From positions 29,982,854-30,046,853 of the forward strand of contig NC_068983.1 in NCBI RefSeq assembly GCF_001194135.2: a DNA stretch of 64,000 nt. The letters are read 5' to 3'. Origin of the DNA: Octopus bimaculoides (lineage: Eukaryota). Below, piece after piece: positions 3,401-63,684 of the stretch (the first letter of the stretch is position 1; every line of letters begins with the position of its first letter). A model generated the notes under the pieces. It saw nothing but the letters and a program-made list of their open reading frames with translations. It was not told the DNA's origin and did no database searches. Made by a program: the position numbers and the translations under genes.

Positions 3401-6400
3401 ACTACCTCATGACTGTGAGCCCAACACTCTAACCACTGAGCCATGTGCCTTCACTAAGTCAAATATATCTAACTATATCTAATGCAAGCCAACAAGAAAG
3501 CCTAGGGCACTTTGATTTACTAGAAGTAACTGCCAATTCCCTCAAATCATTCTTTCTTACATTAGGAAGGATTCATTGAACAATGTTGTTCTAAACAAAC
3601 AAAAATGTGAGAAGTTCAAGGCTTGCTCAGTCATGGCTGATCTGGAGCTCAACAGCCAGAACAATAACATCTTAACATATTCCCCTCATTTTGAAAGATA
3701 TTTTGTGTGCAAAGTGTACAATTCTACTTATATTAAACAATTCTATTGAAACTATTCAAAACCTGTATGTCAAAAAGATCATTTCTTGTATTGCCAAATA
3801 AATATATTGTAAATTTTATTTAAAATCATCTTCCTATTAGATTGTCTTGGTTATCTTCTATTCTAGAGAGTAGAAATGTGTCGCTCTCCTTGGTGGTTTA
3901 GCCAGCTGACAGCCAGTGTAGGGCTGAAGATGTCACCATCATTACACTTCCTATCAGATTATTCTTCAGATGCCATAGGACATTGTCCTTTGGATGTAAC
4001 TTACCTTCAGCCGGAAAATACATCAACCAAAACAAAAGGTCAGTAGTTTGATTTGAATTTATTTGATTAAATTTATTTGATGTTATATCATCATCATCAT
4101 CATAACATCCACTTTTTCTTACCTGCATGGGCAGGACAGATTTTATTGGGGCAAATTTTCTAAGTCCAAATACTCATCCTGGCACCAGATCTTACCTGCT
4201 TCCAAGTAAGGTTATCTTTTCCCCTGATTAGACATATTTTCATAGAATACTGGAAATGAAAGGCATTCATTTACGGCAATCACGCGATGTCAAGGAGACA
4301 CAAACACTTACACACATGCACACACACATGCACACACATGCACACACATACACACTCAATTGGTTTCTTTCAGTTCCCATCTATCAAATCCACTCACAAG
4401 GCTTTGGTTGGTCTGGGGCTATAGTAGAAGACACTTGCCCTAGGTGCCATGCAGTGGTAACAAGCCCCCAAAACCATGTGGTTGGGAAGCAAACTTTATA
4501 ATCACACAGCCATGCCTACATCTTGGAGATGTTATAAAATGAGAATGTTTCAGATTATAAACACCGTCCTTAGAGAGGAAACCTTTTTATGTCTTTCGAT
4601 ATAACATCTCTCATTTTAAAGTGTTCAGATTTTAATTAGTACCTTCCATTGTAATTTTACATAAGCTCTTTTTGGGATGTTATGTTTCTAACATCATCGT
4701 CATTGTCGATATCCTGTTTGCTTTTTCCATATTGGCATGGTTTTAATGACACTTCTTGAGGCAGTATCCTTTGACTGGATAACCTTTTTAGTTGTTTTTC
4801 AAGTGAGATATTTTTTCCATTGGTCTTCTAGTCAAAACTGCCATGCTATAGAACATTGTTTACAGATGTAAACAATAATGTCACCATCACCAACAAAGTA
4901 TCAATGCAAAAGACATAGGGATATAAGCATTCATGCACACACACACAAAACAAGTTTCCATATGGCTTTTGTCCACTAATTTCACTCACAAGCCATTGGT
5001 CAGTCTGAGGCTATAACAGCAGATAGGCACTTGCAATCTCTTTTACAATTTTCCTCATTTAACCAATCAGACAGCAGGAGAATGTTTGTAAATATGATGA
5101 TCATGATGGTACTTAACACCAAGTCTTTTTTTTCTTTTTTGTTTTCATATTGTTTAGCACTGTGGTGAAAGCACATGGCTTAGTGATTAGGGTAATTGGC
5201 TCATGATTGTAAGGTCATGAGTTCGATTGCTAGCAGAATGCTGTGTCCTTGAGTAAGACACTTTATTTCACATTGCTCCAGTCCACTCAGGTGGCAAAAA
5301 TGAGTTGTACCTGTAATTCAAAGGGCCAGCTTTGTCACATTCTGTGTTATGCTGAATCACTCTAAGAACTATGTTAAGAGCACACGTGTCTGTGGAGTGC
5401 TCAGCCACTTTTACAAAAATTTCACGAGCAGGCTGTTCCGTTGATTAGATCAACTGGAACCCTCGTCATCACAACTGATGGAGTGCCAGTTTTTTTAGCA
5501 CTGTGTCAAAACTGCTTGAGTGGATATGTTTCTCATATTACTGTATGTCCCCATGTCAAGCTTGAATGAACATACTAATGTTACAAGATTCAGTGAAAAT
5601 TGATTGTTTTTTCCCCCCCTCTTTTTAATTCTTATCTGATCTATTTCAGTATGGGAGATGTTTCGGCAACCATTCAGTCACAGCCATGAAACGGATACAG
5701 CTGGAACTGTTAAAGCAGATGAAATGAGTGAATCAGAATGCAATTACTTTCCGCATTTAGCCAGAGAACCAAAAATCTTCCTCAGTCTACGCAATCTCAT
5801 TATAAGTTTATGGAATCTTAGCATAAAGGTAATCTTTCTTCATAATTTTCTTGCATTTTTCTTAAAGTTTGCATTAATACAAAACCTCAAATTTAGAGAA
5901 GAGGTAAACATTGAGAAGTTTCTATGCTTATATCATTCATAAGGATAATATAGACCTAGGTAGAGTGAAACCAAATGAAGTTAAAAACTTGAAAACTTTA
6001 TGGTGAGAGGTTTGATCAAAAAGTATTGGGACTGGTGCTGTAAAAAGAAAACTACAACACATATCAATTCGGTATTTAATTTCCTTCGAAGTAGTCCCCT
6101 TCTGAAACCACACACTTTATCCAACGTCATTTCCATTGATGGAAGCATTCCTGAATCTTCTTTTTGGGGATAGCATGCCGCTGCCTCTTTGCATTCTCTT
6201 GGGTTTCCTCAACATCTTAAAATCTTGTTTCTCTCGAGTGGGATTTGATTTTTGGAAAGATTCTTAGCTCTAATAATCTTCGAACCCTCTCTCTTTCCAT
6301 GCACACACACACACACACACATGCACATTTTCTCTGCCATGGTCACTGATGGAACCTCTGGTGTGGTGAGACGTCCACATTCTACACACTTTGCTTCCAA

Positions 6401-9400
6401 GTACTGCTATAAACAGCAGAAGTAAGCAAGAATGTTATAACTTAGTGTACATACACAATAGTGTTCAAGCCCATTCTGTGCTGAGCGGTTTCACTCTAGA
6501 GAACTTTAGCTCTGTAACCATAGTAACAGTTCTGATACTTTTTGATCAGATCTCGTATTTTACAGTGCATTCTTCAAATTCAGGTCTTGTCTCTCTTCTT
6601 CACGCTATGCGTCTCTCCACTTTGAACCACATCTCTCTTCTTTGCACTGTACCGCTTCCTTACATCTCTCTCCTTTGTCACACCTCCCTCCTTCACACCA
6701 TACCTCCCTCTGTTATCCCATGTCTCATTCATACTACGATGTCCTAATTCTATTTAGTTGATATGGTTGTATCAATGTTCAGACTTAAATTAAAAAATCT
6801 TTTGACCTCAGCATAAAGCCAAAGAAGGACCTTCTACTTGGTTCCTCTCCCTACTGGAAACAGCAGCCAAACTACCCTCATATTGCAGCCTAGCATCTTT
6901 AAAACGTAACAATTGGATGATCATAACTGGAATGCTTTTCATCATAGATTTGCTTCATCACATTCAGTGTCATGTCACACTTCTTTAATTATGTTTTACA
7001 CAGTCTAGCTGTCACTTGAAGAGAAAATACTTCGATATTGTTTACTTCCTGGTCAGTAGTGATCAAGCAAACCTATGATCAGTGATATTCCATCGATTGT
7101 GTGGTCTTTTATTCCAACATATTATATTGGAATAAACTTCATGATCTAAAGCAGTGGTTCTCAGTCATTTTTTGCCTCCTTTGATTCTTATATTACTCAA
7201 CTGGATACTTGCAAACGTCATTAGATGCTAATGAATCCTTTGGATGGGAGCCTCATTAGATATTTTATCCCACAAAAGCTAGATTTCAGAGCAGGGCTGA
7301 ATGGCAAAATTAAGACCAGACATCGAATTTTATTGTTGCTCCTTTGTATTCCTTGCTATGAATAAAGTATTTTGAGGCTGAAATTTCAGTATACTATTCT
7401 TTAGTTTTTGAACAGTTTTATATATTTGAAATGTGCTCTATGGGTTTTGTGTTATTTTTTTAATGTTATTTTTCTTTTTATATTTGTAGGAATGGATGAC
7501 TTGGCAGCGGTGTGCTAATTATCTGATATATAGAGGTGTTTCAAGAATTAAGTGTGTTGAATTATTACAGTCAATTATTTACTATCTTACTCGGGAAGGT
7601 CTTATTAACATTGGTTTGCTGCATGATCCACCAACTAGCTTATTGCTACCAAATGTAAACTATGAAAATGTAAGTGTCATTTAATTTACTATGGCTTTCA
7701 CCAGCACGTACACGTTTTGCCTGGTCCTGGTCACAAGAAAGTACAGTTACATAGAAATAAGGAGAGAATACAACTGAGTAAAAAAAAGACAAACAGCATA
7801 TAATACAAGCACTACAGAGCAACAATCCTATTCCAACACTAAGAAAAAATATTTTTAAATTATACCATTTATTAAAGAAACTCATTAAAATAATTATAAA
7901 AATAAAGTTGAAAAAAAGTTGGTATTTATATGAAAATTCTTAAAAATCAATAATAATTAAGAGAAAGAAGACAGTTTAAATTTGGGCAGAGCAGATGATG
8001 TCATCTAGTAGTGAAGCAAAAAAAAAGTGACAATACATATTTGATGGTTACATCCTGAAGAATACCATTTGTTTAGGTAAAAGCTAATAAAGATTGATAC
8101 AACATACACAACATAAAATAAAGAAGAGAAAAAGAATGGGTAAGAAAAGTAAATTGCATGTTTTGCAAATACTAAAACTAACAAATATCCAGTAAAAATG
8201 AGAGAAAGTAGAGCTAATTATCTGATATATAGAAGTGTTTCAAGAATTAAGTGTGTTGAATTATTACAGTCAATTATTTACTATCTAACTCGGGAAGATC
8301 TTATTAACATTGGTTTACTGCATGATCCACCAACTTGCTTATTGCTTATTCTCCCAGAAATACTGTTTCTTATTTATACAAACATAAGACAACATAGAAA
8401 CAATGAAATTGTATACTTTACAAATGCTAAAACTTTGCAAAATATCTAACAAGAACGAGAGAATATATCACAAAATTGATCTCTCAGAAGTACCTGGTAG
8501 TTGCATCAAGATTAAGATGTAATTTCAAATTTCAAATCTTGTAGTTCTCAATATATCTCTTCTAAGTTTATCTCTTGTTGGATTCTAATTCAATATCTTT
8601 TTTGTGTTACAGCATTCAGTTATTGTGGTCGGGGCTGGCATTACTGGACTTGCAGCAGCGAGGCAGTTATCTAATTTTGGAGTGAAGGTTAGTTCTTAAC
8701 CCTTTAGCATTTAAACTGGCCATTTCTGGCCAAAATATTCTGTCTGCTTTACATTCAGACTGGCTGAATCTGGCCTCTCACACCTACCCTATAATGTCAT
8801 TCTAAAAATAGTCACATTATCAAAATCTTGAAGCTACAACACAATTCATGATTAATTCAAAACAACATGAACGAATAAACAGCATATTTAACAGAATAAC
8901 TTGAATGCTAAAGGATTAAAGTATTTATATTTCAGTTGATATTTTTGCTACAGACATCTGTGTTAGTCACTGACAAAGGCAGTATTTACATAAATACCAC
9001 TGATTTAATCTAATTTTAACCAGTATTATTATTTTAATGCATAGGTGCAGGCGTGGCAGTATGGTTAAGAAATTTGCTTCCCAGTCACATGGTTTCAGGT
9101 TCAGTCCCATTGCATGGCACCTTGACTGGCCAAAACCTTGTGAGTTGATCTGGTAGATAGAAACTGAAAGAAACCTGTTGTGTGTGTGTGTGTGTGTGTG
9201 TGTGATTGTGTTGCCATGCCTTGACATTGTGTAATAGTTGTAAATGAGTGTCACAGTCATTCATTTCCAATATTTTGTAATGTGTGGTGTGAGGCTGTTT
9301 GATAAGAAGAGGACTGAGGATTTGATAGGGATGCTGGGGTTAGAAGAATCAGTGGAACGGCTGGCAAGGGTGAATGGGGTTCGGTGGTATGTGCATGTGT

Positions 9401-12400
9401 TGAGGAGGGATGAGGAGCATGTTCTGAAGAGGGTAAGGTAAAGAGTTTGAGGTAAATGGATACTCTCGGAGTGGCTGATGTTAGGAAGGGCATCCAGCTG
9501 TAGAAACCTTGCCAAATCAGATTGGAGCTTGGTGTAGCCTCCCGGCCTGCCAGTTCTTGGTCAAACTGTCCAACCCATACCAGCATGGAAAGTGGACGTT
9601 AAACAATGACAATGATGATAACCCATCCCATATTTTTTTCTTTTTTGCATAACACTAGATTAATTTGTCTTTCATTATTTTTAATAAGGTGTTATTTGAG
9701 GGAGATTTGGTTGTTGTTTCTAGCATTTTGAGCAGCCATAAAGATGTACCATGTTTTGCTGGACTTTATTTATTTGTTTCATTTTTTTAAAAACTCTGAA
9801 CACACCAAAAATACATGGTTGTGTAAAGAAAGATAATGGTGACTAAGAGTTGATAAGACAGATCCAAGTAGGAGAAATGGGCTAGATCAACAATGAAAAC
9901 CTGGAAAAGACAATTTGGGGAGCATTTTCAAGTTGACCTTTGAAATGTTGTCTCGCATAATTGACATTGAAATGAATTACAACCTTTAAAATATGTAATT
10001 TGGTTTTATTGTTATAAATGATGAGCATTCAGCATTATACAACCTTAGAATGTGTATGTATGTGTGTGTGTGCGTGTGTGAGGCAGCAGCTGCACAGGAT
10101 TCAGGGAGAAACAGATTGACCTTTATTTTATTTATTTTTTTTTTTGTTGACATAGAGTTTTTGAAAGCATGGATATTCATGATACCCTTTAAAGATCTTT
10201 AAACTCCTATGAGACTGCCTCTCATCCCATGCCATAAAGCTTCATTTTAAGGCATGCATCATAATTTTGTGTAAGACACTTTTGTTCAACTAGGCTCTAA
10301 ACATCATCATCATCATCATAGTCATCATCCTTTAACGTCCATTTTCCATGTGGGCATGGGTTGGACAGTTTGACCAGAGCTGGAGAACTGCATCAGGTTC
10401 CAGTCTGATTTGACTTGGTTTCTATGGTTAGATGTCGTTCCTAATGCTAACCATTTTACAGTGTGTGCTAGATGCTTTTAACGTGGCATAAGCATGTTGA
10501 TATGGCATTGGCATAAGTGCTTTTTATGTGGCACCAGAACAGGACTCTTGCAGGCCAATCCTCTTCACTAGGAGATGTGGCCTTAATATTTCTGTAGTGG
10601 AGGATGGGTCTTCTGAGAGTACAGCAAGGTACCAGGTGTCTCGGTCTTTTGTCATTTCATCCAAAAGTTCAGCGTCCTGAGGTGGTCATCCTAACAAGCA
10701 ACAACTTTAATAATGTAGAAGTTATTTTTACTATATTCTTTGAAATTGGTGATTAATTTCAAAATTAATAAAAGCACATAGTGTATTTCAGTAAAACCGT
10801 GGTTGTAAAAGGGTTAAGTTTATATAAGAATTAAGATGAAATTCAAAGACTTCATGAGAAATGGTAAGACATTTGAAATTTATGACATACACTGTGATAA
10901 CTGCCTGTAAACATTACAAGAATGAGTGTATTATAGTTAATGATAGATTTCTCTACTGTCTGGATTTTCTTTCATTCAATTCACATTTTTATAAGACTTA
11001 ATAGTTGTTTATGAATATCCTTTAATAGTAGCATCAAGCAGCTGTATCTTATCAACCTAGATCTTCACCTTTTTCAAATGTTTACACTATGAAATGACTT
11101 ACATTATTATCTGAATATATAAGCTTGAGACCGATGACTGTAAATTCTTGAAAAGAAATTGTTGTATTTTTGATATCAATTAAGACTTTATATTAATCTA
11201 TATCGTATTTCTATTTTCTGATTAATATTTTTTTTTTTACTGATTAGGTGACTGTATTAGAGGCCCAGAACTGTTTAGGAGGCAGGGTTGATGAAGCAAG
11301 TAATATTGGGGATATGTGTTTGGGCCAAGGAACTCAAATAATCAACAACTGTGTTAATAACCCGATTTGTTTGATGTGCATGCAGGTGAGTTTGTGGCTT
11401 TGATCAATAGGGAAGAAGCAATTACCATCTTGGCAGTCCAGTTGCATTAGTATATGTAGTTGTCATTTTTAGCATTTTTTTTTTTAGTTTCATGGATGAC
11501 ACATTAACTTTTTATTTATAATTGAAATGTTAAACCTTGGTTTAATCATTATATTGTTCCCTTAGCTATGACATTTGTTTTTGCTTTGGTTATTTTATTA
11601 AATATTTATCACTCTCATTTTCTTATAGATAATAAAAAGGGGGAGCTATCTATAAGACACTGCTTCAAACAGTTCCTGCAAGCAAATAGACACTAAATTC
11701 CAACCCTTGTTATCATAATACAAAAGTTTTCTAAAGTGTGAGTAGATTTTAAGGGTTTTAGCTTAGCTTTGGTTTCATGGCATTAAGAATCAGAGTTTAA
11801 TGCTGGTTTTGTGAGATTATGGTTAGTTTGGTTCAGGCCTTATGACATTAGGGTTAGAACATAGTGCTGGTCTTTTGACATTAAACATATGGAAAAAATA
11901 TATCTTCTACAGATATAATGCTAATCTGTTACAGGCAGCAATTCCAGATAATCCAACAGGTTTGAAAATTGAGATGTGTAGAATTATGACACTGCCCAAT
12001 TGCACTACACATATGAACACAAGAACTATAAGTTTGTGGTTGAATACCATAGCTATTTCAGTTAATATGGAAACTTTAAGAAATGTGTTTTGGAGGAAAT
12101 ATTGTTTCTCTTTCTATCTTATCAAAAGCACTTTTAATCTCTGCATGTACTGTACCAGAGCTGATATTTTTAACTTTGGTGATTACTGGTTTATATCCAG
12201 TATTTAATTTAGCATTTCATTCTTTTGAGATCAGTAATATAAGCTCCAGTAATATTCTGAGAGCAAATAGATTTGGCTCTTATCTGGAGAAAAATGTGTC
12301 TCTACCTTCCTTGTTGCTGCAGAAGCTGTTAATCAACACCAGCCACTCTGATTTGGCATTCTCTGTTTGCCATGGGTTTAAACCAGAAATTTACTAAGCT

Positions 12401-14705
12401 AACAAATGTCTTACAGATAAGATTAACCATAGAATATATTTAAAATGAAAACCTATCATAAGTAGTGAGAAAGTGTAGATTTTGAATATTTTATTTTCAG
12501 GCAGACATAGATATGAAAATTATTCGAGACAAATATGAATTAATCTTTGAAAATGGTCAGCTGGCACTGCCAGAATCTTGTCGGCGATTGAATTTCCACT
12601 TTAATGCTATTCTCGATGTTATTGCTGAATGGAGGAAAGATAATGCTTTAGCAAAAGATACTGGCTTATTAAGTAAGTATATTTGTTAGAAGTGTTTCCT
12701 TTGTTAAATAGTCTGCATAATTTATTTATATGCTTTAGCTTATGTTTAATTTGGTTCTTAGCCCCAGAGTTAACCCCTATCTTTGCAAAACTTTTCAATT
12801 TCTTCCTATCTCAATGAAAATCCCTTGGCCCCTCTTATTTGCTGGTCTTTTGCACTCACTTCTAATATCTCAAAGTTGATGGAAAGATGACAGTCATTAA
12901 AAAAACACCTCCAACACCTTAAATTCCTCTCCTTCTTCAATGACCATCAATAACTTCCATAAAACCAAATCTACTGGAGACCTACTCTCCTGTGTCACTC
13001 ACCAATGGGCCTTCACTTTTGAAAAATTTAATAAGAACATATTTATTTACATGACATATCTGGAAAGCAAATCTCCCAGCTAGACAAGGCTTCATTATCT
13101 CTTGGATAGGGTGCATTCAATCAGATCACACCATGATGTTATGTAATGATAGAGCCTTCTCTCTGACCCATACTTTTGAAACTCTATGTGCCCCATAGTT
13201 TGATTTCATTCTTCCACAATTTTATTCCAGTATATAAACAACCTATTTGAAATTTCCTTTAGCAATGCTCCTGACTGCAGATGATATGACCTGTCACTCC
13301 TCTCCAGCTGTCTGTGTTCAAGTGTCATCTACATGTAAACTAGATGCCATATACCATATTTATACTGACTTCATGCATAAAAACCTCAAAAGCATTCTCC
13401 AATGAGGTCATATCAATCTTCTCTCCATCAACAATAAAACAATATAATCACTACATATATCACACAAAAAGTTAGTTTTAGGCCTCACCATCAATAAAGA
13501 TCTCTCTTGCTGGTCTCTTAACATCAACTTAGCAAAGGCTATATCACAAGGACTGATCTTTCTTCTGGGGCTAAAAATACAGCCTCTTCCGCCTTAACTA
13601 CGTACTCTACAAAGCTTAAGTGAGGACTACAATAATGGAATACTAAAAGCCCATCTCCAAAGAAGGTTACCTTACTTAAAGCCTGCTACAACAGTGGCTG
13701 CTGTTCCCAAGAGTTGGGTGGTGTCATGCCACATGCACTTAGGCCTTCCTAACTCATTTGCCTCTTTCTCTTCTTTTCATCACTCATATTATGTCCTTTC
13801 CATCACTGCACTAACCACATCATCCAGTCCTTTCTCCTCAAGACAACAGGCCCTTGAAATCCCATCCTGCCCGTTTTTTTTCTAGTAATTATTCAAGAGG
13901 AACATGGATTATATCAATCTCACCAATCAGAGAGAGCCCATAAAGACCGTTGGTACAGTTCTTACAGTTCCTTTCTCCAGATCAAACCATTAAAAAAAAC
14001 CCATTTAAGTTTAGTAATAAATTTTTGTGTTCAGAATTTGTTTTGATTTTATGTATTTTGAAAGTGACTTTATTGTTTTGTTTCTTTAACAGTAATGACA
14101 TTAACCTTTTATGGTGACTCCACATTTTTTTTTTTATATTACCTAAGACAGCATCACAAAACCTATTCCCCTTTAGGGTCAGGAAGTATTCCAAACCTGA
14201 ACAGCAGTTAGTTAAAATATGACCAGTACAGATGCATTTCCTATACAGTATCTCTCTCTCTCAGATTCTTGAAAGGATCTAAGGAAAATGTGCTTGTCAA
14301 CCTCTGTTCTCCCTGTCTTTCCACACTATTTCTGTTTCTCTGAGCCTACTGATTCTATACACTACCTAAAACAACTGCAATTCCTTCACCTCATCTGTTT
14401 CTGCCCTTCCTAATATACAGGGTGTCCACAAAGTCTGGGTACATGTAGTAAATAAAATCATAACATAAACAATTAAATATAAGAAATAATAATTTCTTAA
14501 AATATGTGTTAATCCCCATGTACCCAGACTTTGTGGACACCCTATACATTATTTTTTTAGTCCTGTGCGAAACATTTCAGCAAATATTTTTTCCAAGAAC
14601 TGCTTCCCTAGAGATATCCCTCCTAGCCATATTTACTTTTTTCCAACCCCAACCCTGCCACAATCCAATCTGATTCTTATTCTTTAGTTCAGAAAGGTGT
14701 CAGAT

Positions 14706-14741
<36 letters not shown>

Positions 14742-17700
14742 AAAAGCAAATACAGATCACATGCTATTATTTAATACTCAGATATTTCTTTGATTCCTTC
14801 TAAATATTACATCTTTCATATACTTTTATTTTAGGTTCTTTATTAAAATGAAAATTATACAAGTTGCACATTTATACATAAACACACATATGTATATTTC
14901 TTTTACGTAGTTTTGTGTTGTTACAGGCAAGTTTCGAGAAGCCCATGACCAATTTTTGGAGCAGTCCCAAATAGAATTTTCTCTGGTGAGATATTCAGAT
15001 TCTTTAAATCTATTTTTAAAAACAGAAATATCTTTTGATATTTCTGCTTGTCACCATGTTTATGCCTTCCAATGTTAAACACATTTGACCATGGTGCAGG
15101 CATGGCTTTGTTGTTAAGAACCTTGCTTTGCAACCATGTGGTTACAGGTTCAATTCCATTGCATAGCTCCTTGGACAAATGTCTTCTACTACAGCTGATC
15201 AATGCTTTGTGAGTGAATTTGGTATGTGAAAGCCCATCATCATCATCATCGTTTAACGTCTGCTTTCCATGCTAGCATGGGTTGGACGATTTGACTGAGG
15301 ACTGGCGAACCAGATGGCTGCACCAGGCTCCAATCTGATCTGGCAGAGTTTCTACAGCTGGACGCCCTTCCTAACGCCAACCACTCCGAGAGTGTAGTGG
15401 GTGCTTTTACGTGCCACCAGCACATGGGCCAGTCAGGTGGTACTGGCAACGGCCACGCTCAAAATGCTGTTTTTTACGTGTCACCTGCACAGGAGCCAGT
15501 CCAGCGGCACTGGCAATGACCTTGCTTGAAACTTTCTGTTTTTCTCTTTTTTTGAAGCCTGTCATGTGTATATATATATATATATATATGTATGTAAGGG
15601 ACGACCGTGCGAACTCAAAAAGGAGAAATGGTGACGAATGGAAAAACAGAGGACTCCTTTTATTTAAACGTGTCACACGGTCGAACACACAATAATATGT
15701 ATCAGATGATGATATATATGATATGTTATACGACGATAACATAGATGACCAGTAATGAAAGACCACAACCGTATAAGATGAATAACAGAGATATTTATTG
15801 TAGNNNNNNNNNNNNNNNNNNNNNNNNNNNNNNNNNNNNNNNNNNNNNNNNNNNNNNNNNNNNNNNNNNNNNNNNNNNNNNNNNNNNNNNNNNNNNNNNN
15901 NNNNNNNNNNNNNNNNNNNNNNNNNNNNNNNNNNNNNNNNNNNNNNNNNNNNNNNNNNNNNNNNNNNNNNNNNNNNNNNNNNNNNNNNNNNNNNNNNNNN
16001 NNNNNNNNNNNNNNNNNNNNNNNNNNNNNNNNNNNNNNNNNNNNNNNNNNNNNNNNNNNNNNNNNNNNNNNNNNNNNNNNNNNNNNNNNNNNNNNNNNNN
16101 NNNNNNNNNNNNNNNNNNNNNNNNNNNNNNNNNNNNNNNNNNNNNNNNNNNNNNNNNNNNNNNNNNNNNNNNNNNNNNNNNNNNNNNNNNNNNNNNNNNN
16201 NNNNNNNNNNNNNNNNNNNNNNNNNNNNNNNNNNNNNNNNNNNNNNNNNNNNNNNNNNNNNNNNNNNNNNNNNNNNNNNNNNNNNNNNNNNNNNNNNNNN
16301 NNNNNNNNNNNNNNNNNNNNNNNNNNNNNNNNNNNNNTGCTGTCGTGTGGTACACGGAACAGTTCTCAAAGAGAAACTGGACCGAGACAAATTTGTGGGG
16401 TATGAGTTGATCTATATATAGCGTTAAGAGGGCTCCCAGATGGCTTCAGAATTTTACTCTATCACGTGACCTTATTAGGGGCCGTGATTGGTCAGTTTGC
16501 GTTCTGGCGGGAAAGGTTCGAAGAAGTTGCCGATTCGAATAATAATCAGTCACGTGATGACAAGGAATGGGTTCTCTACTACGCTCGCATTTATTTATAT
16601 TTAAATGAGAAGATTGTATGTAATGGCGATAGTAGTTTGTATCTAATGGCAGGAGGTAGTTTCACTACATATATATATTTGTCCCCCCATCACTGCTTGA
16701 TGACTTGTGTTGGTGTGTTTACATCCCCATAGCTTAGCAGTTTGGCAAAGAGACCGGTACAATAAGTACTAGGCTTTAGATTATTAGTCCTGAGGTCAAT
16801 TTATTCAACTAAAAAAAAACATTTAAGATTATTGTCTCAATTTGATCTAAATTCTCAAAACCGTTTCTTTATTTTCTTGCATTCCAGTTAAGACTTAGAA
16901 TCAGAGATAAAAGAAACAATAACCTAAGGATGACTATTGTGTAGTGAAACTTTTTTAAAGAAAATAAGGAATTAATGATTTAAATGCTCCAAAATGAATA
17001 TGAAATGTTTTGTGTTTCTGAATTTATGGAATTATCATTGCTTATTATTTGACTATTATATTTTTCTTACTTTAGGATGAAGAAAAGATCCTTGAGTACT
17101 ATCTGGGTCACATGGAGTTGGTTAGTGGTTGCAGCGTGGAAGATTTATCATCGATGCATTGGGATCAACATGAAGCTTTCCCTCAGCTTGGCAGTTCCAG
17201 CATAATGTTATGTCAAGGACTATCAGAGTTATTAAATCTTCTCGCCAAAGATTTAGATATTCAATATAATGTTGAGGTCTGTGGATATTTTCTTTAGAAA
17301 TAATAATTTTTTTTCTGGGATCAGGTGTGATGGTGTGAGTAAGAAGTGGTTTGGAGTTCAATCCCACTGTGTTGTACCTTGGGCAAGTGGCTTCTACTCT
17401 ACCCCAGTATTAAGCAAAGCCTTGTGGACAGATAAAAAAATTAAGTAAATCAATAAAACAAAATATTTTCTCTGATTATTACCTGAAAGGATGAAAGTCA
17501 AAATTAACTTGCTGAGAGCAACTTTACCTTCCGTCCTTTAAAATATAATACTGGTCAAGTTCTGGGGTTGATTGTAACAGTGAAATCCCTTTCTCCTAAT
17601 TTCAGGCCTTATGCCTATGCTAGAAACACCTGTTAAATTTATAGGTACCAGCATGGCTATTTGGTTGAGAAGTTTTCTTCACAACTATGTGGTTTTGAGT

Positions 17701-20700
17701 TCAGTCCCACTGTCTGGCACCTTAGTGAAATGTTTTATACTACAACCCCAAGTCAACCAAAGTCCTGTGAGTGGATCTGGTAAACAGGAACTAAAAGAAC
17801 CCCATTGTTTGTGTGTGTAAGTGAGTGAATGGGCTTGTATTTCTTTGTAAGCAAAGGGTTCATTCATACAGTGTCATTTGTTTCCAGTCCTTGACATTAA
17901 ATGTGTCCAGACTGCTTGTTATTTGTTAGACTGAGAGATTGTTATCCCACTTGGAAACAAGAAGGGCATCCAGCCAAAGAAAACTCTGTTCCAACATACT
18001 TACCTGACCCATGCACGCATGGAAAATTAGACATTAAAATGATGAAGATTATGCTAACAAGTGGGTTGGCTTGTGTAAATTTAAATGTTCATGTATGAAT
18101 TGCTGGTACAAGAGGACATCTGTCTCATTCTACTGCTAACTCCTCACTCATGAAGTGGAAATGATACTTATTTTACAGCTAAGTAGACAAGAGCAAACAG
18201 AGTAACTAAGTTTGAAGTTATGTCTTTGTGGTCAACATAAATAAGGATTTAGTAGATAGAATTGATTAGCAAAAGCTGTCTCTCTTTTATTCCTATAAAT
18301 GATCACTCAGTAAAACTTAATATGAATGTATGTTTTGTGGAAATGTGGCTTTATACAAATGTTAAATTTACTTTAACTTTGACTAAAACCTCTTTGACTT
18401 TCAGGTTGTAAAGATTGACTATAGTGAAGCTGATGTGATAGTGCATGCATCATCTGGAGCTGTTTTCCGAGCCAATAAGGTCTGTTCAATCACACTTTAT
18501 GGCTTATTAGCTTTTTAAGTTAATTAGTCAACATTTCTAATTATTTAATCGTTATTTTTGTTTAATTACAGTTATTTGTAGCACTTTTGATTCTCAACCC
18601 AAAACTATTCATGATTTATTTATGAATTGACTTTAAACTCAACTTCAAATAGTTAATGTTGCCTTCTCTCTGTCTCTTTTCTATTTCTTTTTCAATAATT
18701 AGACTCATCTAAATTGAATAGGCAAAGCAGTCAGCTGGGACCCTAATGTACCGGAGAGAGGGATCAAATTATGATTGGTTAATATGTTAAAACGTGTTTG
18801 GTTAATGCTAAGGTGGTAGATTAGAAAAAGTGATAGAACAAATGCCAAAATACCTTTTAGTATTTGGTTATGTTGCTTTATATTTTGAGTTCAAATCCTA
18901 CTGATTATCAACTTTGCTGTTCATCCTTACTAGGTTGATGTAATTGAGAATAGAAGTTTTTTTTAAAATTTTTACCCATTCACCAGACATCTTTGACTTT
19001 TAAAGCTATAAAATGGTCAACATTTAGTCGTTCTGAAACCTTGCATTGTTTTTTGTGGAACAGCTTCAATAATGACCCTTAGTTAGTTATTGTCCATTGA
19101 AGGTCATCTACAACCTTCGTCATCTTCAAGTATCATCTTAAACTAATAATTCATGGTTGTTACGAACAAACAATACTCAAACTCCTACTTGTTTAGATTA
19201 AAGTTTTGTTACCTGAAGCACTAAGCTATTCAGTCTTTACATTAATTATAAAAACATTATAGCATGTAATGTAGAGTAAATTACTCAAAGATGCTTTTAC
19301 ATGGAAAAAAGTTACAATCAGGTGAACATATTTAATACAGGGAACATTAAAAAGCTAGTTAGAAATATTTATACTGAGAGAATATAAAACAACATTTAAT
19401 CAATGACTAATAATACGTTATTTCAGCAAGTACAGGAGACAACTCTTGACATGTTTCAGTCTTATTACAACCTTATTAGCAAATCAATAGATTTCACTGT
19501 ACCTGCCAAAGTAGTGATAGGAGGGTCTATCAGTAAATATAGTGGTTAACTTTTGCCAGGTTTGTAATATTTATTTTTCCCTTCAACTTTACATTGTTAA
19601 TAGGTTCCCATTTCTTCTCTATATAAAGCAACATAATTACATAATTATACAAAATGCAACCACAGAAACATTGGTATGTAAAGTAAATTGTGTTTTCTTC
19701 ATTACCAGGTATTGGTTACAGTTCCCTTATCTGTGTTACAAAAAGATGTTATTGATTTTGTGCCTCATCTGCCAGTGGAGAAAACTAAAGCAATTAAGTC
19801 ACTTGGTGCTGGTGTTATTGAAATGGTAAGTCTTGAGAATTAGAATTTTTTTTTTATGTTTCTTGCAAAGTAGGTGGGTGAGTGCAGAATCCTTTGAAGG
19901 ATGAACAAAATTCCTTGTGGTATTTCTTTACATCTATAGGAAAACTAGAATTAACATTTAAGTTGTTATTATTTAATCCCTGTCAGAGATTTAGCTGCTA
20001 TTTCTGTAAGGCTGAGTGAGCACAAAGAGTAGAGATTCTCAACATGGGAGGTACCACTGCCAAGGTGGTGCTGGGTATGTTGAAGGGGATGTTAGCCCTT
20101 AGGGGGCTATGAGGTGGGAGTGGGACAGTGAGGTAACATAATTAACATACTAGTTTTGTTTTTTTCATGCTTTTACTGATCACTGCATGTGTGTGTGTGT
20201 GTCTGTATGTATGTCTGTGTGACAGCTGTCATAGGAAATATCAGTTGACTGTGACCAGCAGTTCTTTGGATCATTGACTCAAAGCAGTGTGTGATATACA
20301 ATAGAGTTTTGTTAACAAGGTTCTAAATTGGTGAATCCTGATGTTTATTTTTGTTGTTTGTAGATTTTTAGCTGAAATGTTTACAAGTTTCTAAACTGTT
20401 GTTGTTGTTGTTTAGGTTGTTTTGCAGTTCAAGAAGAACTTTTGGCGAGAGAAGGTGAAAGATGTCGATGTATTTGGTTATATTGCCTCTGATGAAAGCT
20501 GCCGGGGGCTGTTCAGTGTGTTCTATGATCTCTCAAAAGTCCAGGTGAGAATCAAGAAATTGTTCAACATGAATTTTTAATCTTTTTTTTTATATATATC
20601 ATTTTCCATAATTTTAGACTTTGGAGACATTTTTATTTAAATCTTGTTTTTGCATTGTTAAGTGTTTCATTATTTTCAATTTTGAGTTCGGATAAATATT

Positions 20701-23304
20701 TTACTTTAAACATACATACCTACAGACAGACACACATGCTTTTTCTTGTATTAATTATACTTTTTTTTATTATTATTTTGTCCCTTGTCAGAAATCTGGC
20801 AAAGAGACTCACGTTTTAGTGACCTATATTGCTGGAAATGGTCTGAAAAAAGTGATGGGTAAATCAAGTGAAGAAATTGTACAAGCATGTACGGATGTCT
20901 TGAGTAAGCTGTTCCCAGAACAGGTTAGTATTTATAATTAGAGGGACCAGCTATCCGAATTGACAGTACCTCCACTACTAACTTGGTCACCCAGATAACG
21001 GAAGTTATCTACTACCTCTATCTTACCCCACTAGCAGTTGATGGAGTCTATTTTCTCTACATTTTCAGTGTTTGTTGTACCTGTGCACCTTCCACACACA
21101 AAAATTGTTGGACAAAGGAGAAAGAGCAGCTCATGATATGTGATAGCTCTCCTGTGGTTATGTAGTAACAGAGGGTTTGAAATGGAAATTGTTACCGTAA
21201 AGGGTATTATAAATGTGGATGACTGTTTTTGCTTTGGGTCCCTATTGCAACAGTTTAGTTTCACTTCTCCTCGCTGACAGTGGTCTGTACACAAATTGCC
21301 TGTGCACAAATTAATATTGAATAAGTTTTTTATGCATGTGTATCTATTAAATTTGAAAGATCTTGTCTGTAATATTAATATTTTGAGAACTAACCAACGT
21401 ATGGTGAGCTATCCTGTTCAACTGCATTATTTACCGAGGACATTCAACTCTTTCATGTTTCATTCACCTAATATTTTCAGTGGTCCTATGTTTCAGAAAA
21501 ACTCAGTTTATTTGATGTGAAATATGTTATTATTAGATGGTATTTAAAATAAGTGTGTATTTATTACAAATTTAATAAATCATAATAAACATGATGCCTA
21601 AAGAATTTTTGAAAAATCAAAGCATTTGTTGTTCAGATTACTCTGTCAAATGTAATGCTTATTTATTCCCATTGGGCATGTCTTAATGTTGGTTTAGAGC
21701 AACATAAATCTTAAGATATCATTCATGTTATGAGATTTTTATTGAGTACAAAATATCCCATTATATCAATATCTAAAATATTTTTATCAGAAGAAAGTCT
21801 TTTCAAATATTTTTGTTTTGGCTGCAGAAAATCCCAGAACCTGAGCAGTATTACACAAGTCACTGGCAGAAAGAAAGTTCCAATCGTATGTCTTACAGTT
21901 ATGTCCCGGTTGGTGTAGATGCATCTGTATACACACACATTGCACAACAGCTCCATGACAAGATTTTTTTTGCTGGAGAAGTAAGTACTACATTTTCATG
22001 TTGCGATAACCTTGTTTTTGTAAAAGATATTTGCCTAGTTTAACCCTATCGTGATCATATTTTCAATGAAATATACTGCCTGTGTGTGTTTCATTTAGTT
22101 TTTAAAATAATCAAGAATTTGGAAGATATAGTAAAATAACGTTTTCTATATTTATTTGTTGTTTGGAACATAATTTAACAGAAGCTTCTTTGATAAAATT
22201 ATGACAGAAGGTTTTAATTTAAAAATAAAGGCAAGATTATTGCAGTAATAAGTTCAGTTATTGGGTGAAGGAGTGGGGACCAGGAAATAACATTTTAAGT
22301 TACAGGCTCTTAGATGGAGTGTAGAAAATTGGTGTGTTGAAGTAATTGCTGATGGAAATTATTAAATACAACAAACTCTCTTGTAAATTTACTGTTTATT
22401 TTTCTTAATGATGCAGGCCTTAATCACTTTCTTTGACTTCTTAATCTTAACTTTAATATAAATATGAACACTTTATAGAATGGACGGTTTTGTATTGTGT
22501 ATTCAGAATTAGTCTCACTACTTTCCCTTCACCTCCATCTCCACTTCCCTTTCGTAATCTCACAAACTTAACCCATCCACTCCCCCTATCCAATCCTTGG
22601 CTCCACTTATATGCATTTCTCTGTAACTTGAATGTACCCATTGTTCACATCTTCAACATCTCCCCACCTCTCTCTCTCTCCAACTGAGGTTGCCTTGTAT
22701 CCCCTTTACTGCAAGGCACCTATTTCTGACCTCTGTTCATATTCATACCAGGTGGTCAGGCAGCTATACCAGTTAGTGTCTATCATTATCCAGTATCTTT
22801 GTGATGCTATTTCTATTGAAACACATTACCTGTGTGTTTGAATTAATTTTTAAAATAATGAAAATATGGATAAATTTGGCATACTGGTTTTTCTCAAAAA
22901 TGCTTTACATGTAGAATTATGATCCGTTTCAATATAGATATGGATATTTTAAAATGAACAATCTTATCTCATAGAACTAGATGAACAGTCTTAGATTCAT
23001 TGCTGTCTTAAGATTTAAATCATTGTTACTTCCTTTATAAATAGTCTTTCATGAATAATTATGGACCAAAGTTTCAATTTAAATATGAACACTTGAAAAC
23101 AAACAATTTCATAACATAGAACTGGTGGAGCAGTCTTAGCTTTGTTGGTATCAAATTACTGAGTTATTTCCTTTTATAAGTAGTTGTTAATTGTTTAAAA
23201 ATATATTTCAGGCCACCTGCCGACAGTTTCCACAGTCACTGGCTGGTGCTTATTGGAGTGGATTGAGAGAGACTGAAACAATTCTGAAGTGTTTTGATCA
23301 ATGA
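390..23304 (+). CDS. KDM1B: Lysine-specific histone demethylase 1B (LSD2/AOF1) homolog, 5'-truncated by the window; 17 coding exons
   Basis: Join 390-479,901-1126,2815-2856,3867-4038,5650-5828,7490-7669,8613-8687,11248-11385,12501-12672,14927-14985,17076-17276,18405-18479,19709-19825,20416-20544,20792-20923,21828-21980,23212-23304 gives one open frame with AG/GT borders. Recognisable LSD2 motifs: SRWHHISAGEHFCNECF, zf-CW FWVQCTRPECCKWRQL, SWIRM LSLRNLIISLW, Rossmann VVGAGITGLAAARQL, FHFNAILDVIAEWRKD, FFAGEAT...GAYWSGLRE, stop TGA at 23302-23304. Confidence 0.96.
901..1126 (+). CDS. KDM1B: KDM1B exon (zf-CW)
   Basis: ttcag|t HKLGYETF...FMADKLLPFWVQCTRPECCKWRQL...CGMTSEGKK|gtaat. Confidence 0.95.
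1555..2420 (-). mobile_element. Degraded CR1/L2-like LINE RT and 3' remnant
   Basis: Minus-strand pieces read LGLTTTKNL...GFLFSARKYF and a ..WNSLP-like 3' end; many stops and frameshifts. Confidence 0.55.
2815..2856 (+). CDS. KDM1B: KDM1B short exon (last zf-CW Cys)
   Basis: tttag|KERQLEACAVPEDH|gtaagt; corresponds to human DHCSLPED. Confidence 0.85.
3109..3454 (-). mobile_element. tRNA-headed SINE (same family at 31053-31382 on - and ~59318-59617 on +)
   Basis: Three near-identical copies of gtaaagacccc...ggattgcacctagaaag...aaccactgagccatg; A/B-box-like head on the element strand. Confidence 0.8.
3867..4038 (+). CDS. KDM1B: KDM1B exon (linker)
   Basis: ttctag|RVEMCRSPWWFSQL...TSTKTK g|gtcagt; corresponds to human RVLEVSNHWWYSML. 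Confidence 0.88.
5165..5488 (+). mobile_element. tRNA-headed SINE with CORE-like motif (second copy ~46328-46558)
   Basis: tggcttagtg..ttagg head, gagttcgat B-box-like, gtgtccttgag.aagacactttatttcac; repeated within the window. Confidence 0.75.
5650..5828 (+). CDS. KDM1B: KDM1B exon (SWIRM, N-terminal part)
   Basis: ttcag|ta WEMFRQPF...FLSLRNLIISLWNLSIK|gtaat. Confidence 0.93.
6005..6555 (-). mobile_element. Internally deleted mariner/Tc1 element
   Basis: Imperfect TIRs (gagaggtttgatcaaaaagtattgg / tctgatactttttgatcagatctcg-ta) and a degraded transposase C-terminus on the minus strand. Confidence 0.65.
7490..7669 (+). CDS. KDM1B: KDM1B exon (SWIRM, C-terminal part)
   Basis: tgtag|EWMTWQRC...YYLTREGLINIGLL...NYEN|gtaagt. 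Confidence 0.93.
8213..8346 (+). pseudogene. Duplicated fragment of KDM1B exon 7490-7669
   Basis: 134 bp colinear with 7514-7647, 5 substitutions, no splice signals. Confidence 0.93.
8613..8687 (+). CDS. KDM1B: KDM1B exon (FAD-binding GxGxxG)
   Basis: ttacag|HSVIVVGAGITGLAAARQLSNFGVK|gttagt. Confidence 0.95.
8700..8915. mobile_element. piggyBac-like MITE (also 30633-30836, 41918-42138, ~50602-50969, 56767-56983)
   Basis: TTAA|CCCTTTAGCATT...AATGCTAAAGGG|TTAA termini, cleanest at 41914-42142; five copies share the internal sequence. Confidence 0.85.
9283..9620 (+). mobile_element. RTE-clade LINE 3' fragment (ORF C-terminus joined to (GAT)n-tailed 3' end)
   Basis: LGLEESVERLARVNGVRWYVHVLRRDEEHVLKR resembles the RTE RW.GHV.RR motif; followed by the abundant ...aggaagggcatccagc...acgttaaac(gat)n tail. 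Confidence 0.75.
10305..10690 (-). mobile_element. RTE-related 3' end remnant
   Basis: (cat)n tail, shared 3' module and an RTE C-terminal-like segment (EMTKDRDTW). Confidence 0.6.
11248..11385 (+). CDS. KDM1B: KDM1B exon (amine oxidase domain)
   Basis: attag|VTVLEAQNCLGGRV...GTQIINNCVNNPICLMCMQ|gtgagt. Confidence 0.94.
12501..12672 (+). CDS. KDM1B: KDM1B exon
   Basis: ttcag|ADIDMKII...NFHFNAILDVIAEWRKD...GLL a|gtaagt. Confidence 0.94.
12830..13900 (+). mobile_element. Degraded CR1/L2-like LINE RT remnant
   Basis: Fragments resembling TADD.T, LGLTINKDLS.W and LYKA.VR..MEY with frameshifts. Confidence 0.55.
14418..14544. mobile_element. Tc1/mariner-type MITE
   Basis: TA|CAGGGTGTCCACAAAGTCTGGGTACATG ... 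27/28 inverted match|TA. Confidence 0.9.
14927..14985 (+). CDS. KDM1B: KDM1B exon
   Basis: ttacag|gc KFREAHDQFLEQSQIEFSL|gtgag; phase fits both neighbours; corresponds to human KESGIQFSE. Confidence 0.85.
15238..15530 (-). mobile_element. (GAT)n-tailed RTE-related SINE-like element (other copies ~27311-27600 -, 29953-30112 -, 38100-38325 +, 49035-49250 +, 49471-49650 -, 53250-53470 +, 62680-62855 +)
   Basis: Many mutually similar copies ending ...gcatggaaagcggacgttaaac(gat)n. Confidence 0.85.
15593..16669 (-). mobile_element. Probable solo LTR (contains an N gap)
   Basis: TGTA...TACA termini, CpG-rich. Minus-strand order: E-box 16551, TTTCCCGC 16514-16507, CCAAT 16491-16487, E-box 16463, TATA-like 16412-16421, AATAAA 15799-15794. 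Confidence 0.65.
17076..17276 (+). CDS. KDM1B: KDM1B exon
   Basis: tttag|DEEKILEYYLGHMELVSG...WDQHEAFPQ...LAKDLDIQYNVE|gtctgt. Confidence 0.93.
18405..18479 (+). CDS. KDM1B: KDM1B exon
   Basis: ttcag|VVKIDYSEADVIVHASSGAVFRANK|gtctgt. Confidence 0.92.
19709..19825 (+). CDS. KDM1B: KDM1B exon (ends at the catalytic-Lys position, here Met)
   Basis: accag|VLVTVPLSVLQK...KSLGAGVIEM|gtaagt. Confidence 0.95.
20416..20544 (+). CDS. KDM1B: KDM1B exon
   Basis: tttag|VVLQFKKNFW...RGLFSVFYDLSKVQ|gtgaga. Confidence 0.94.
20792..20923 (+). CDS. KDM1B: KDM1B exon
   Basis: gtcag|KSGKETHVLVTYIAG...LSKLFPEQ|gttagt. Confidence 0.92.
21828..21980 (+). CDS. KDM1B: KDM1B exon
   Basis: tgcag|KIPEPEQYYTSHW...MSYSYVPVG...KIFFAGE|gtaagt. 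Confidence 0.95.
23212..23304 (+). CDS. KDM1B: KDM1B last coding exon
   Basis: ttcag|ATCRQFPQSLAGAYWSGLRETETILKCFDQ*. Confidence 0.95.
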   Translation, partial: ATCRQFPQSLAGAYWSGLRETETILKCFDQ

Positions 23305-26142: not shown

Positions 26143-27298
26143 CAAGGGTATGCTGAAAAGTTCCTGGCTTTAGGTAAAAGAAAACACAGGAGGATCAATT
26201 AATTATGATTTTATTTAACATATTCCCCTCCCAGTTTCACACACTTAATGCACATGATATCTTTCGGGCGAGTTCGTTGCCAGTGCCCCTGGGCTGGCTC
26301 TTGTGTGGGTGGCGCATGAGGTGTTTCGAGCGGATCGTTTGCCAGTGCACCCCGGACTGGCTCATGTACGGGCGACATATGAAATCTTTCGAGCGGGATC
26401 GTTGCCAGTGCCCCTGGACTGGCTCATGTGTGGGCGACACATGATATCTTTCGAGCGGGATCGTTTGCCAGTGCCCCCAGACTGGCTCAAGTGCGGGCGA
26501 CACATGATATCTTTCGAGCGGGATCGTTGCCGGTGCCCCTGGGCCGGCTTGCGGGTGACACATGAGGTTTTTCGAGCNNNNNNNNNNNNNNNNNNNNNNN
26601 NNNNNNNNNNNNNNNNNNNNNNNNNNNNNNNNNNNNNNNNNNNNNNNNNNNNNNNNNNNNNNNNNNNNNNNNNNNNNNNNNNNNNNNNNNNNNNNNNNNN
26701 NNNNNNNNNNNNNNNNNNNNNNNNNNNNNNNNNNNNNNNNNNNNNNNNNNNNNNNNNNNNNNNNNNNNNNNNNNNNNNNNNNNNNNNNNNNNNNNNNNNN
26801 NNNNNNNNNNNNNNNNNNNNNNNNNNNNNNNNNNNNNNNNNNNNNNNNNNNNNNNNNNNNNNNNNNNNNNNNNNNNNNNNNNNNNNNNNNNNNNNNNNNN
26901 NNNNNNNNNNNNNNNNNNNNNNNNNNNNNNNNNNNNNNNNNNNNNNNNNGGTGGCACATAAAAGACACCATTTCGAGCGTGGCCGTTTTCGTGCGGGTGA
27001 CAGGGTGACACGTAAAAGCACCCACTACACTCTCTGAGTGGTTGGCGTTAGGAAGGGCATCCAGCTGTAGAAACTCTGCCAAATTAGATTGGAGCCTGGT
27101 GTTGCCATCCGGTTTCACCAGTCCTCAGTCAAATCGTCCAACCCATGCTAGCATGGAAGGCAGACGTTAAACGATGATGATGATGATTGCAGCAGCTCCT
27201 CAGCTTTCCTAAGTCCTGGAAAAGAACTTGGAAGGTTAGGCCTCCAACCAGGCCTTTTGCGGTACCCTTAAAGCCAAGAACTTCTCAGCACCCCCTTG
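26143..27298 (-). mobile_element. Mariner-derived MITE split by a retroposon insertion (intact copy 55899-56116)
   Basis: 26143-26250 plus 27187-27298 reconstitute the reverse complement of 55899-56116; TIR gctgaaaagttcctggcttt / aaagccaagaacttctcagc; TA flanks. Confidence 0.8.
26252..27186 (+). mobile_element. Long copy of the (GAT)n-tailed element with a 5' tandem array of ~60-bp units
   Basis: At least 5.3 units (26252-26577) before the N gap; standard 3' module 27015-27186. Confidence 0.85.
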
Positions 27299-27903
27299 TA
27301 TGTGTGTGTATCATCATCATCATCATCGTTTAACGTCCGCTTTCCATGCTAGCATGGGTTGGATGATTTGACTGAGGGCTGGTGAACCAGATGGCTACAC
27401 CAGGCTCCAATCTGATTTGGCAGAGTTTCTACAGCTGGATGCCCTTCCTAACGCCAACCACTCCGAGAGTGTAGTGGGTGCTTTTATGTTCCACTGGCAC
27501 GAAGGCCAGTCAGGCGCTACTGGCAATGGCCACACTCAAAATGGTGTATTTTACGTGCCACCTGCACAGGAGCCAGTCCAGTGGCACTGGCAACGCAAGA
27601 AGGCGATGCTGGGCACAGGTGCCATCACGATTTCGCTTGCCCCAACAGGTCTTTGCAGGCCGAGTTTAGTGTCCAATGTATATATAAGTGCAGGCATGGC
27701 TGTGTGGTTAGGAAGCTTGCTTCCCAGCTACATGGTTTCAGGTTCAGTCCCACCACGTGGCACTTTGGGCAAGTGTCTTCTGCTATAGTCCCGAGCCGAC
27801 CGAAGCTTTGTAATTGAATTTGGTAGGCGGAAGTTACTGCCGTGTGTGTATATGTCTGTGTATGTGCTTGTGCCTCTCTCCGAAAGAGAGAGAGAGGGAT
27901 ATG

Positions 27904-33575: not shown

Positions 33576-63684
<30,109 letters not shown>

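Follow-up and report, generated by a model that had tools for sequence, protein, structure and literature searches.

Does LSD2 (KDM1B) still demethylate histone H3 in octopuses? The question is raised by a stretch of 64,000 nucleotides from Octopus bimaculoides (NC_068983.1, positions 29,982,854 to 30,046,853 of the forward strand; hereafter the window), in which the KDM1B/LSD2 gene occupies positions 390-23304 on the + strand and carries a methionine codon at the site of the catalytic lysine. Animals are known to have only two flavin-dependent histone demethylases, of which LSD2 is one. The lysine (K661) bridges through a water molecule to N5 of the flavin and is the residue that is mutated for 'dead' LSD controls. 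A sequence-only reading of the window had proposed a lineage-specific LSD2, either with altered chemistry or retained as a scaffold, a reader or a ligase. The analysis described here supports this proposal by the loss of the lysine throughout the sampled coleoids, an intact gene and ratios of non-synonymous to synonymous substitution rates (dN/dS, omega) of 0.03-0.16.

The gene was located by tblastn and modelled by manual splicing, which placed exons 3-19 in the window; a human LSD2 sequence served as the probe only, and exon ends were set by manual inspection of splice sites. The model comprises 17 exons with GT-AG boundaries at 16/16 introns and an uninterrupted frame of 743 codons. Its translation, followed by a stop codon, is exactly residues 70-812 of O. 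bimaculoides XP_014767604.1, and residues 1-69, encoded by earlier exons, lie upstream of window position 1. The lysine site is covered by three features:

19709-19825, + strand: 117-nucleotide exon of phase 0, encoding VLVTVPLSVLQKDVIDFVPHLPVEKTKAIKSLGAGVIEM, with acceptor ...attaccag and donor gtaagt
19823-19825, + strand: ATG (Met) codon at the human LSD2/LSD1 K661 site, final codon of this exon
20416-20544, + strand: exon after the Met codon, VVLQFKKNFW...SKVQ

The ATG is preceded by GGT GCT GGT GTT ATT GAA and followed by the donor GTAAGT; the adjoining intron of 590 nucleotides ends in ...gtttag, and the next exon opens with GTT GTT TTG CAG TTC (VVLQF). The window letters at 19823-19825 and 20416 thus bear out the spliced peptide GAGVIE-M-VVLQF given by the sequence-only reading. 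In a gap-free phmmer alignment from a search of all PDB chains, the octopus Met stands opposite the Lys of human LSD2 in GAGIIEKIALQF / ...SLGAGIIEKIALQF...; the number K661 refers to the human LSD2 isoform of 822 residues, and one paper gives the LSD2 residue as K666. The exon has the same size of 117 nucleotides in the LSD2 genes of Argonauta and O. sinensis. Two decapodiform complementary DNA (cDNA) contigs, L003 and L004, read GAA ATG and GTT GT. on either side of the same exon junction, and as these spliced cDNAs join ATG to GTTGT., the splice of the Met exon is confirmed by transcripts in relatives. A wrong splice site was rejected, since the only in-frame alternative acceptor (20428) drops VVLQ and leaves Met in place, and the cDNAs back the junction of the 20416 type. 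Rescue of the lysine by RNA editing was ruled out as well: adenosine-to-inosine editing turns ATG into GTG (Val) and never into a Lys codon, as had been stated before. A mutually exclusive exon bearing Lys was also dismissed, as permissive tblastn (E up to 10, matches with E <1 inspected) found a single copy of the exon in the window.

ATG or Met was found at the K661 site in at least nine independent assemblies or transcriptomes, and the codon or residue reads as follows:

O. bimaculoides: ATG (window)
O. sinensis and O. vulgaris LSD2: Met
Octopod genomic contig L002 (89% nucleotide identity to the window): ATG
Sepia pharaonis CAE1281704.1: Met
Sepia-like genomic contig L001: ATG
Decapodiform protein P0134: Met
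Decapodiform cDNA contigs L003 and L004: ATG
Argonauta hians, two annotated copies: ACG (Thr)

Sequences from SRR27666067, SRR9970004, SRR11869391 and ERZ21867824 were placed by similarity to Sepia pharaonis or Octopus only. The same ATG recurs across independent genomes and transcriptomes, which rules out that Met arose by an error of sequencing or assembly or is an allele private to this genome. Lys is absent from all sampled coleoids, octopod as well as decapodiform, and is kept by other molluscs: among the best hits, 118/118 LSD2 orthologues from outside the cephalopods have it, about 15 other molluscs included, a set that consists mostly of vertebrates and in which all molluscs agree on Lys. 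An exhaustive HMMER search of LSD and amine-oxidase hits, aligned with hmmalign, gave Lys in 138/146 representatives (clusters at 50% identity). Of the eight remaining representatives, an LSD2-like fragment has an alignment gap at the site, and the other seven are hits of lower score, mostly short proteins of ~420-490 residues; the gap-bearing fragment aside, all LSD2-like cluster representatives have Lys except the coleoid one. The coleoid Met at this site is far beyond chance.

Neither a Nautilus LSD2 nor a Lys-bearing sister was found in a search of 5.8 billion proteins or of 1.84 billion representatives; the nearest non-coleoid hits came from bivalves, gastropods, an annelid, amphioxus, a coral and a fish. 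Because Nautilus was not found, the lysine is taken to have been lost on the way to coleoids, once their lineage had parted from the other sampled molluscs, and because the loss is common to both major coleoid lineages, it predates their split. The simplest history by parsimony is a change from Lys (AAR) to Met (ATG) before octopods and decapodiforms separated, followed by Met to Thr (ACG) toward Argonauta.

The lysine is not the only residue that was replaced. The 118 non-cephalopod LSD2 sequences share 146 columns of at least 98% invariance; coleoids depart from these at 19-29 and other molluscs at no more than nine. Seventeen near-invariant columns, K661 included, are altered in every coleoid, all of them in the amine-oxidase domain, and the derived residue is the same in Octopus and both decapodiforms at 15/17. 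The zinc-finger, linker and SWIRM parts contain 0/24 such columns, the segment corresponding to human residues 520-580 contains 10/21 (Fisher p=1.9e-5). Much of this segment is encoded by one exon:

17076-17276, + strand: H3-tail pocket exon, human LSD2 ~531-598, containing ILEYYLGHMELVSGCSVEDLSSMHWDQHEAFPQLGSSS

Eight of the changes, with the equivalent positions of LSD1, are:

H539Y: LSD1 H532
N542H: LSD1 N535
A546V: LSD1 A539
C547S: LSD1 N540
N562H: LSD1 D555
F568L: LSD1 F560
G570S/N: LSD1 G562
H572S: LSD1 H564

The pocket residues that LSD1 and LSD2 share (LSD1 H532, N535, A539, F560, G562 and H564) have accordingly become Y, H, V, L, S/N and S in all coleoids, and L543M and L551V are also altered in the pocket segment. 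Outside the ten pocket changes, C465Y, D480C, E523Q, T755S, G776A and N798C accompany K661M; the Asn of GEATNR in the terminal exon, invariant elsewhere, is Cys in every coleoid. In this mapping the LSD1 numbering reproduces known residues, and the LSD2 alignment was verified against PDB. LSD1 A539 and D555 bind substrate or SNAG, and A539E and D555K impair such binding (PMC9803847). Identity of segment 520-580 to deuterostome LSD2 is 31% in coleoids and 54% in other molluscs, and within coleoids the segment is 80-87% identical. As the zinc-finger, SWIRM, flavin adenine dinucleotide (FAD)-lobe and C-terminal parts of coleoid LSD2 diverge no more than those of other molluscs and only segment 520-580 stands out, generally fast evolution of the protein was ruled out.

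Selection on the gene was estimated from exact coding sequences of O. bimaculoides, O. sinensis, Argonauta and the two decapodiform cDNAs:

O. bimaculoides versus O. sinensis: dN/dS 0.036 (NG86), dS 0.13; amine-oxidase-domain omega 0.034-0.048
Octopus versus Argonauta: dN/dS 0.10 (NG86), dS 0.95; amine-oxidase-domain omega 0.12-0.16
Two decapodiforms: dN/dS 0.075 (NG86), dS 0.62; amine-oxidase-domain omega 0.064-0.092

Across the comparisons omega amounts to 0.03-0.16, estimates by LWL85 and maximum likelihood agree, and the amine-oxidase domain taken separately is under purifying selection. The pocket segment yielded omega 0.00-0.05 where dS was estimable. At dS ~2.1, a neutral ATG is expected to be identical in Octopus and decapodiforms with p ~0.026, which indicates that the Met itself is constrained in most lineages. 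A burst of change followed by a freeze, together with low omega, shows that the amine-oxidase domain is not decaying and that its new surface is functional. How strongly the new pocket is constrained argues for continued binding of some ligand. Coleoid LSD2 is conserved as tightly as a working enzyme.

Argonauta has gone further. In Argonauta hians contig L005 (GCA_054771915.1), LGGRV is replaced in frame by LETQL at 23097-23234 (GGR to ETQ) and the codon at the lysine site, 36999-37001, is ACG (Thr). The protein also reads GEVT for GEAT and Ala for G807; the frame of 812 codons and the structure of 19 exons are kept. The losses in its FAD motifs suggest that FAD binding may be lost in that lineage. 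Argonauta LSD2 evolves ~2.3 times faster than that of Octopus, in all domains alike; an acceleration specific to the amine-oxidase domain was not supported, with 46 versus 20 unique changes in this domain and 15 versus 6 elsewhere (Fisher p=1).

The protein encoded in the window has otherwise the organisation of an LSD2. Pfam matched zf-CW (33.4 bits, cut-off 27.5), SWIRM and Amino_oxidase, and phmmer against PDB ranked human LSD2 (E=1e-198) before LSD1 (6e-59) and polyamine oxidases (5e-32). SWIRM is followed by an amine-oxidase domain without the Tower insertion, in a single alignment of 737 residues to 4gu0_A. The FAD motifs GAGITG, VLEA, LGGRV and AGEAT are present, and the aromatic-cage Tyr (LSD1 Y761 / LSD2 Y767) is kept, with MSYSYV aligning with GSYSYV and MAYSFV. 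An AlphaFold2 model of O. vulgaris LSD2, which is 99% identical, reached a predicted template modelling score (pTM) of 0.82; template modelling (TM) scores were 0.83-0.90 to crystal structures of human LSD2 and 0.58/0.72 to LSD1. The sequence-only reading had called the open reading frame, zinc fingers, SWIRM and GxGxxG intact. This was confirmed for the SWIRM domain, for GxGxxG and for the open frame of 743 codons; of the zinc fingers the window itself spans the second half of C4H2C2 and the CW type, both intact, and the first Cys ligands, encoded before position 1, are intact in the RefSeq protein. All eight Cys/His ligands are readable in protein P0125.

Only one Octopus LSD2 cluster appeared among the best 120 hits. 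No second cephalopod LSD2 was found among these hits, all of which score at least 650 bits, so that short or diverged copies could escape; descent of the window gene from a duplication that left an intact LSD2 elsewhere is disfavoured on this basis. As judged from these comparisons, the window gene is the LSD2/KDM1B orthologue and single-copy in O. bimaculoides. Elsewhere among molluscs, Tegillarca granosa has a second LSD2-like protein of 517 amino acids that keeps Lys (KAJ8305079.1, P0137) beside a full-length LSD2 (P0020), which indicates that duplication of LSD2 does occur in molluscs. In the annotation of the fish Menidia menidia, more than 20 LSD2-like amine-oxidase fragments of 228-528 amino acids are spread over many chromosomes (P0211, P0247, P0248, P0290-P0304), which points to a piece of KDM1B that was dispersed by retro-copying or by capture in a transposon.

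With a key residue lost, the fold kept in the predicted model and the domain under purifying selection, coleoid LSD2 would carry the marks of a pseudoenzyme. Loss of the lysine together with wholesale replacement of the tail pocket suggests that canonical O2-dependent demethylation of mono- and dimethylated lysine 4 of histone H3 (H3K4me1/2) is probably lost or much reduced. Our preferred reading, to which we assign a probability of roughly 0.55, is that coleoid LSD2 is a putative pseudo-demethylase, held under constraint as a binder of chromatin or a scaffold that for the most part does not catalyse. A binder or scaffold is favoured because Argonauta has lost FAD motifs and because LSD2 has an E3-ligase role on OGT that is independent of demethylation (PMC11118440). 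The course of events may be pictured as follows. In stem coleoids, with the timing set by parsimony, the N5-bridging Lys became Met (AAR to ATG), and in the same interval 16 more near-invariant residues were replaced, ten of the 17 lining or flanking the H3-tail pocket; octopods and decapodiforms have since kept the derived state with hardly any change. The protein is predicted to fold, and its zinc-finger, CW and SWIRM modules would bring it to chromatin; FAD is probably retained in Octopus and cuttlefish. Without the bridge from Lys through water to N5, re-oxidation of the flavin by O2 would be crippled, and amine oxidation probably too; with the tail pocket rebuilt, H3K4me1/2 would no longer be turned over at the canonical rate, and the rebuilt pocket may bind a ligand that is still under selection.

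The octopus protein shares with human LSD2 (KDM1B, AOF1; 4GU0, 4HSU, 4FWE) the C4H2C2 and CW zinc fingers, SWIRM and a Tower-less amine-oxidase domain, is collinear with it over 737 residues at 43% identity, and keeps the FAD motifs and the cage Tyr; it differs in Met for Lys661, in ten replacements in the H3-tail pocket and in six further ones. Catalysis-independent roles have reportedly been described for S. pombe Lsd1/2. Almost all members of the flavoprotein amine oxidoreductase superfamily have the N5 Lys, whose main implicated role is in how reduced flavin reacts with O2 (PMC12224317). This Lys is strictly conserved in all polyamine oxidases, and K300M of the maize enzyme is the classical mutant with impaired function (PMC7576179). 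On peptides LSD1 K661A shows no activity, and it is the standard 'demethylase-dead' allele, in which scaffold functions persist (PMC9803847). Both mutants lack the same Lys as coleoid LSD2, and K300M is the same exchange of Lys for Met in a homologous fold; unlike the coleoid protein, they are laboratory point mutants with a wild-type pocket, whereas the coleoid change is natural and its pocket was rebuilt and then conserved. The E3-ligase role of LSD2 on OGT, the scaffold functions of LSD1 and the S. pombe proteins set a precedent for LSD work without demethylation, but in these cases the wild-type site is intact, while the coleoid wild type has no catalytic Lys.

Several points weigh against a non-catalytic role. 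In mouse polyamine oxidase, K315M is said to slow mainly the re-oxidation of the flavin. About 20% of the activity of LSD1 K661A remains on nucleosomes (PMC9803847), a residual activity to which the sequence-only reading had correctly referred, and together these two mutants suggest that the Met variant could still be a slow enzyme. The very strong constraint on the pocket, the FAD motifs retained in Octopus and decapodiforms and the cage Tyr would be expected equally of an enzyme with a new substrate. The assignment of residues to the pocket is by sequence equivalence to LSD1 and not by three-dimensional coordinates. A diverged Lys-bearing LSD2 paralogue may yet exist in coleoids, of which the sample covers the octopod and decapodiform sequences listed above.

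The strongest competitor of the binder or scaffold is that coleoid LSD2 is still a flavoenzyme, albeit a different one. It is possible, though clearly less probable, that the protein acts on a new substrate, either methyl-lysine in another context or a non-histone amine, and that the exchange of Lys for Met altered the oxidative half-reaction; slow reactivity with O2 or use of another electron acceptor, as in dehydrogenases of the superfamily, is a similarly tentative part of this proposal. Burst and freeze with 15/17 derived residues identical across coleoids, the low omega of the pocket segment (0.00-0.05), the Met kept in both major lineages (neutral p ~0.026) and the retention of GxGxxG, VLEA, GGR, GEAT and the cage Tyr in Octopus and decapodiforms are all in line with it. 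The superfamily includes bona fide dehydrogenases, its Lys is tied mainly to O2 reactivity, and a natural member with Glu for Lys, from Pseudomonas sp. GL-RE-19, has the lowest kox (PMC12224317). However, dehydrogenases such as NicA2 retain the N5 Lys (PMC12224317), and NicA2, Pnao and the Pseudomonas member, which belong to the same superfamily and show suppressed O2 reactivity, differ from coleoid LSD2 in being bacterial small-molecule enzymes without a chromatin role that mostly bear the Lys. Moreover, the change from Met to Thr and the loss of GGR in Argonauta, where the gene is kept, are hard to square with an essential redox function, and we know of no candidate substrate or acceptor.

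Between the two stands a more general proposal, which we regard as plausible at best and short of even odds: the burst before the octopod/decapodiform split may have turned the amine-oxidase domain into a module of new, still-selected specificity. Such a module might contain flavin and read a histone or peptide ligand, or it might be an amine oxidoreductase with another substrate or electron acceptor, and this identification is just as provisional.

That coleoid LSD2 works as a canonical H3K4me1/2 demethylase, essentially unaffected because Lys is dispensable on nucleosomes with a cofactor and the other changes are neutral or compensatory, is unlikely. The strong purifying selection on the gene and the ~20% activity of LSD1 K661A on nucleosomes (PMC9803847) would fit. 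Against it, neither the 118/118 other LSD2s nor the LSD1-type representatives nor any of the polyamine oxidases deviate from the Lys, which indicates that it is not dispensable elsewhere; in addition, ten invariant pocket residues changed together and an FAD-binding motif was lost in Argonauta. Least probable by far is an artefact or a decaying gene (sequencing or assembly error, wrong splice model, unprocessed pseudogene, or paralogue of an intact LSD2), as might be suspected from the N gaps and the intronic partial duplicate of a SWIRM exon in the window and from the two LSD2-like proteins of Tegillarca, since at least nine independent assemblies or transcriptomes share the codon, the model matches RefSeq exactly with 16/16 GT-AG introns and an open frame, omega is far below 1, the exon is single-copy in the window and other cephalopod proteins are absent from the best 120 hits (at least 650 bits).

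Coleoid LSD2 is a new natural variant of a well-known enzyme rather than a system of a new kind. Full-text literature searches that paired KDM1B with octopus, LSD2 with K661, and histone demethylases with cephalopods turned up no published report of the substitution. If the proposed conversion of the domain into a module of new specificity is correct, this would be the first natural LSD-family protein whose wild type left canonical H3K4 demethylation, and a lineage-specific change of the chromatin toolkit in animals known for massive RNA recoding and genome rearrangement. A clade with a Lys-less wild-type LSD2 would offer a natural experiment on the roles of LSD2 besides H3K4 demethylation, and it bears on the question of whether the Lys serves in amine oxidation or in O2 activation. 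It also suggests that H3K4 demethylation in gene bodies is organised in coleoids unlike in other animals.

The remaining exons of the gene in the window are:

390-479 and 901-1126, + strand: zinc-finger exons, second half of C4H2C2 and CW-type zinc finger
2815-2856 and 3867-4038, + strand: linker exons (splice model)
5650-5828 and 7490-7669, + strand: SWIRM exons (splice model, Pfam)
8613-8687, + strand: dinucleotide-binding exon, GAGITG (GxGxxG) intact
11248-11385, + strand: FAD ribose/pyrophosphate-binding exon, VTVLEA...LGGRV intact
12501-12672, 14927-14985 and 18405-18479, + strand: remaining amine-oxidase-domain exons (splice model)
20792-20923, + strand: amine-oxidase-domain exon, KSGKETHVLVTYIAGNG...LFPEQ
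21828-21980, + strand: exon with MSYSYV (cage Tyr kept) and FFAGE
23212-23304, + strand: terminal exon, ATCRQFPQSLAGAYWSGLRE...FDQ and stop

In the intron that follows the second SWIRM exon, positions 8213-8346 are a direct copy of 134 nucleotides (96%) of 7514-7647, part of that exon. The copy, apparently a dead duplicate of part of the exon, has no usable splice sites, and its frame continues into sequence without homology.

Downstream of the gene, 23305-64000 contains no open reading frame of at least 110 amino acids with recognisable coding character, small-exon genes not having been searched for, and the ~40 kb 3' of the LSD2 stop codon appear to be intergenic and repeat-rich. A match to Rfam Hammerhead_1 (type I hammerhead ribozyme) at 59112-59158 on the - strand, with 34.4 bits against a gathering score of 34, may be a hammerhead of a retrozyme or Penelope-like element, or a borderline false positive. 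A tRNA-like Rfam match at 51474-51545 on the + strand (34.3 bits) is probably the head of a tRNA-derived short interspersed nuclear element (SINE) and not a tRNA gene. An element that recurs in the introns and downstream of the gene (15355-15408; 27417-27788 on the + strand; 26237-27118 on the - strand; and others) is apparently an abundant SINE-like repeat of octopus. A tandem array with a unit of 63 nucleotides occupies 26251-26577 and adjoins an N gap, and further N gaps lie at ~2880-3010, 26580-26990 and 38060.

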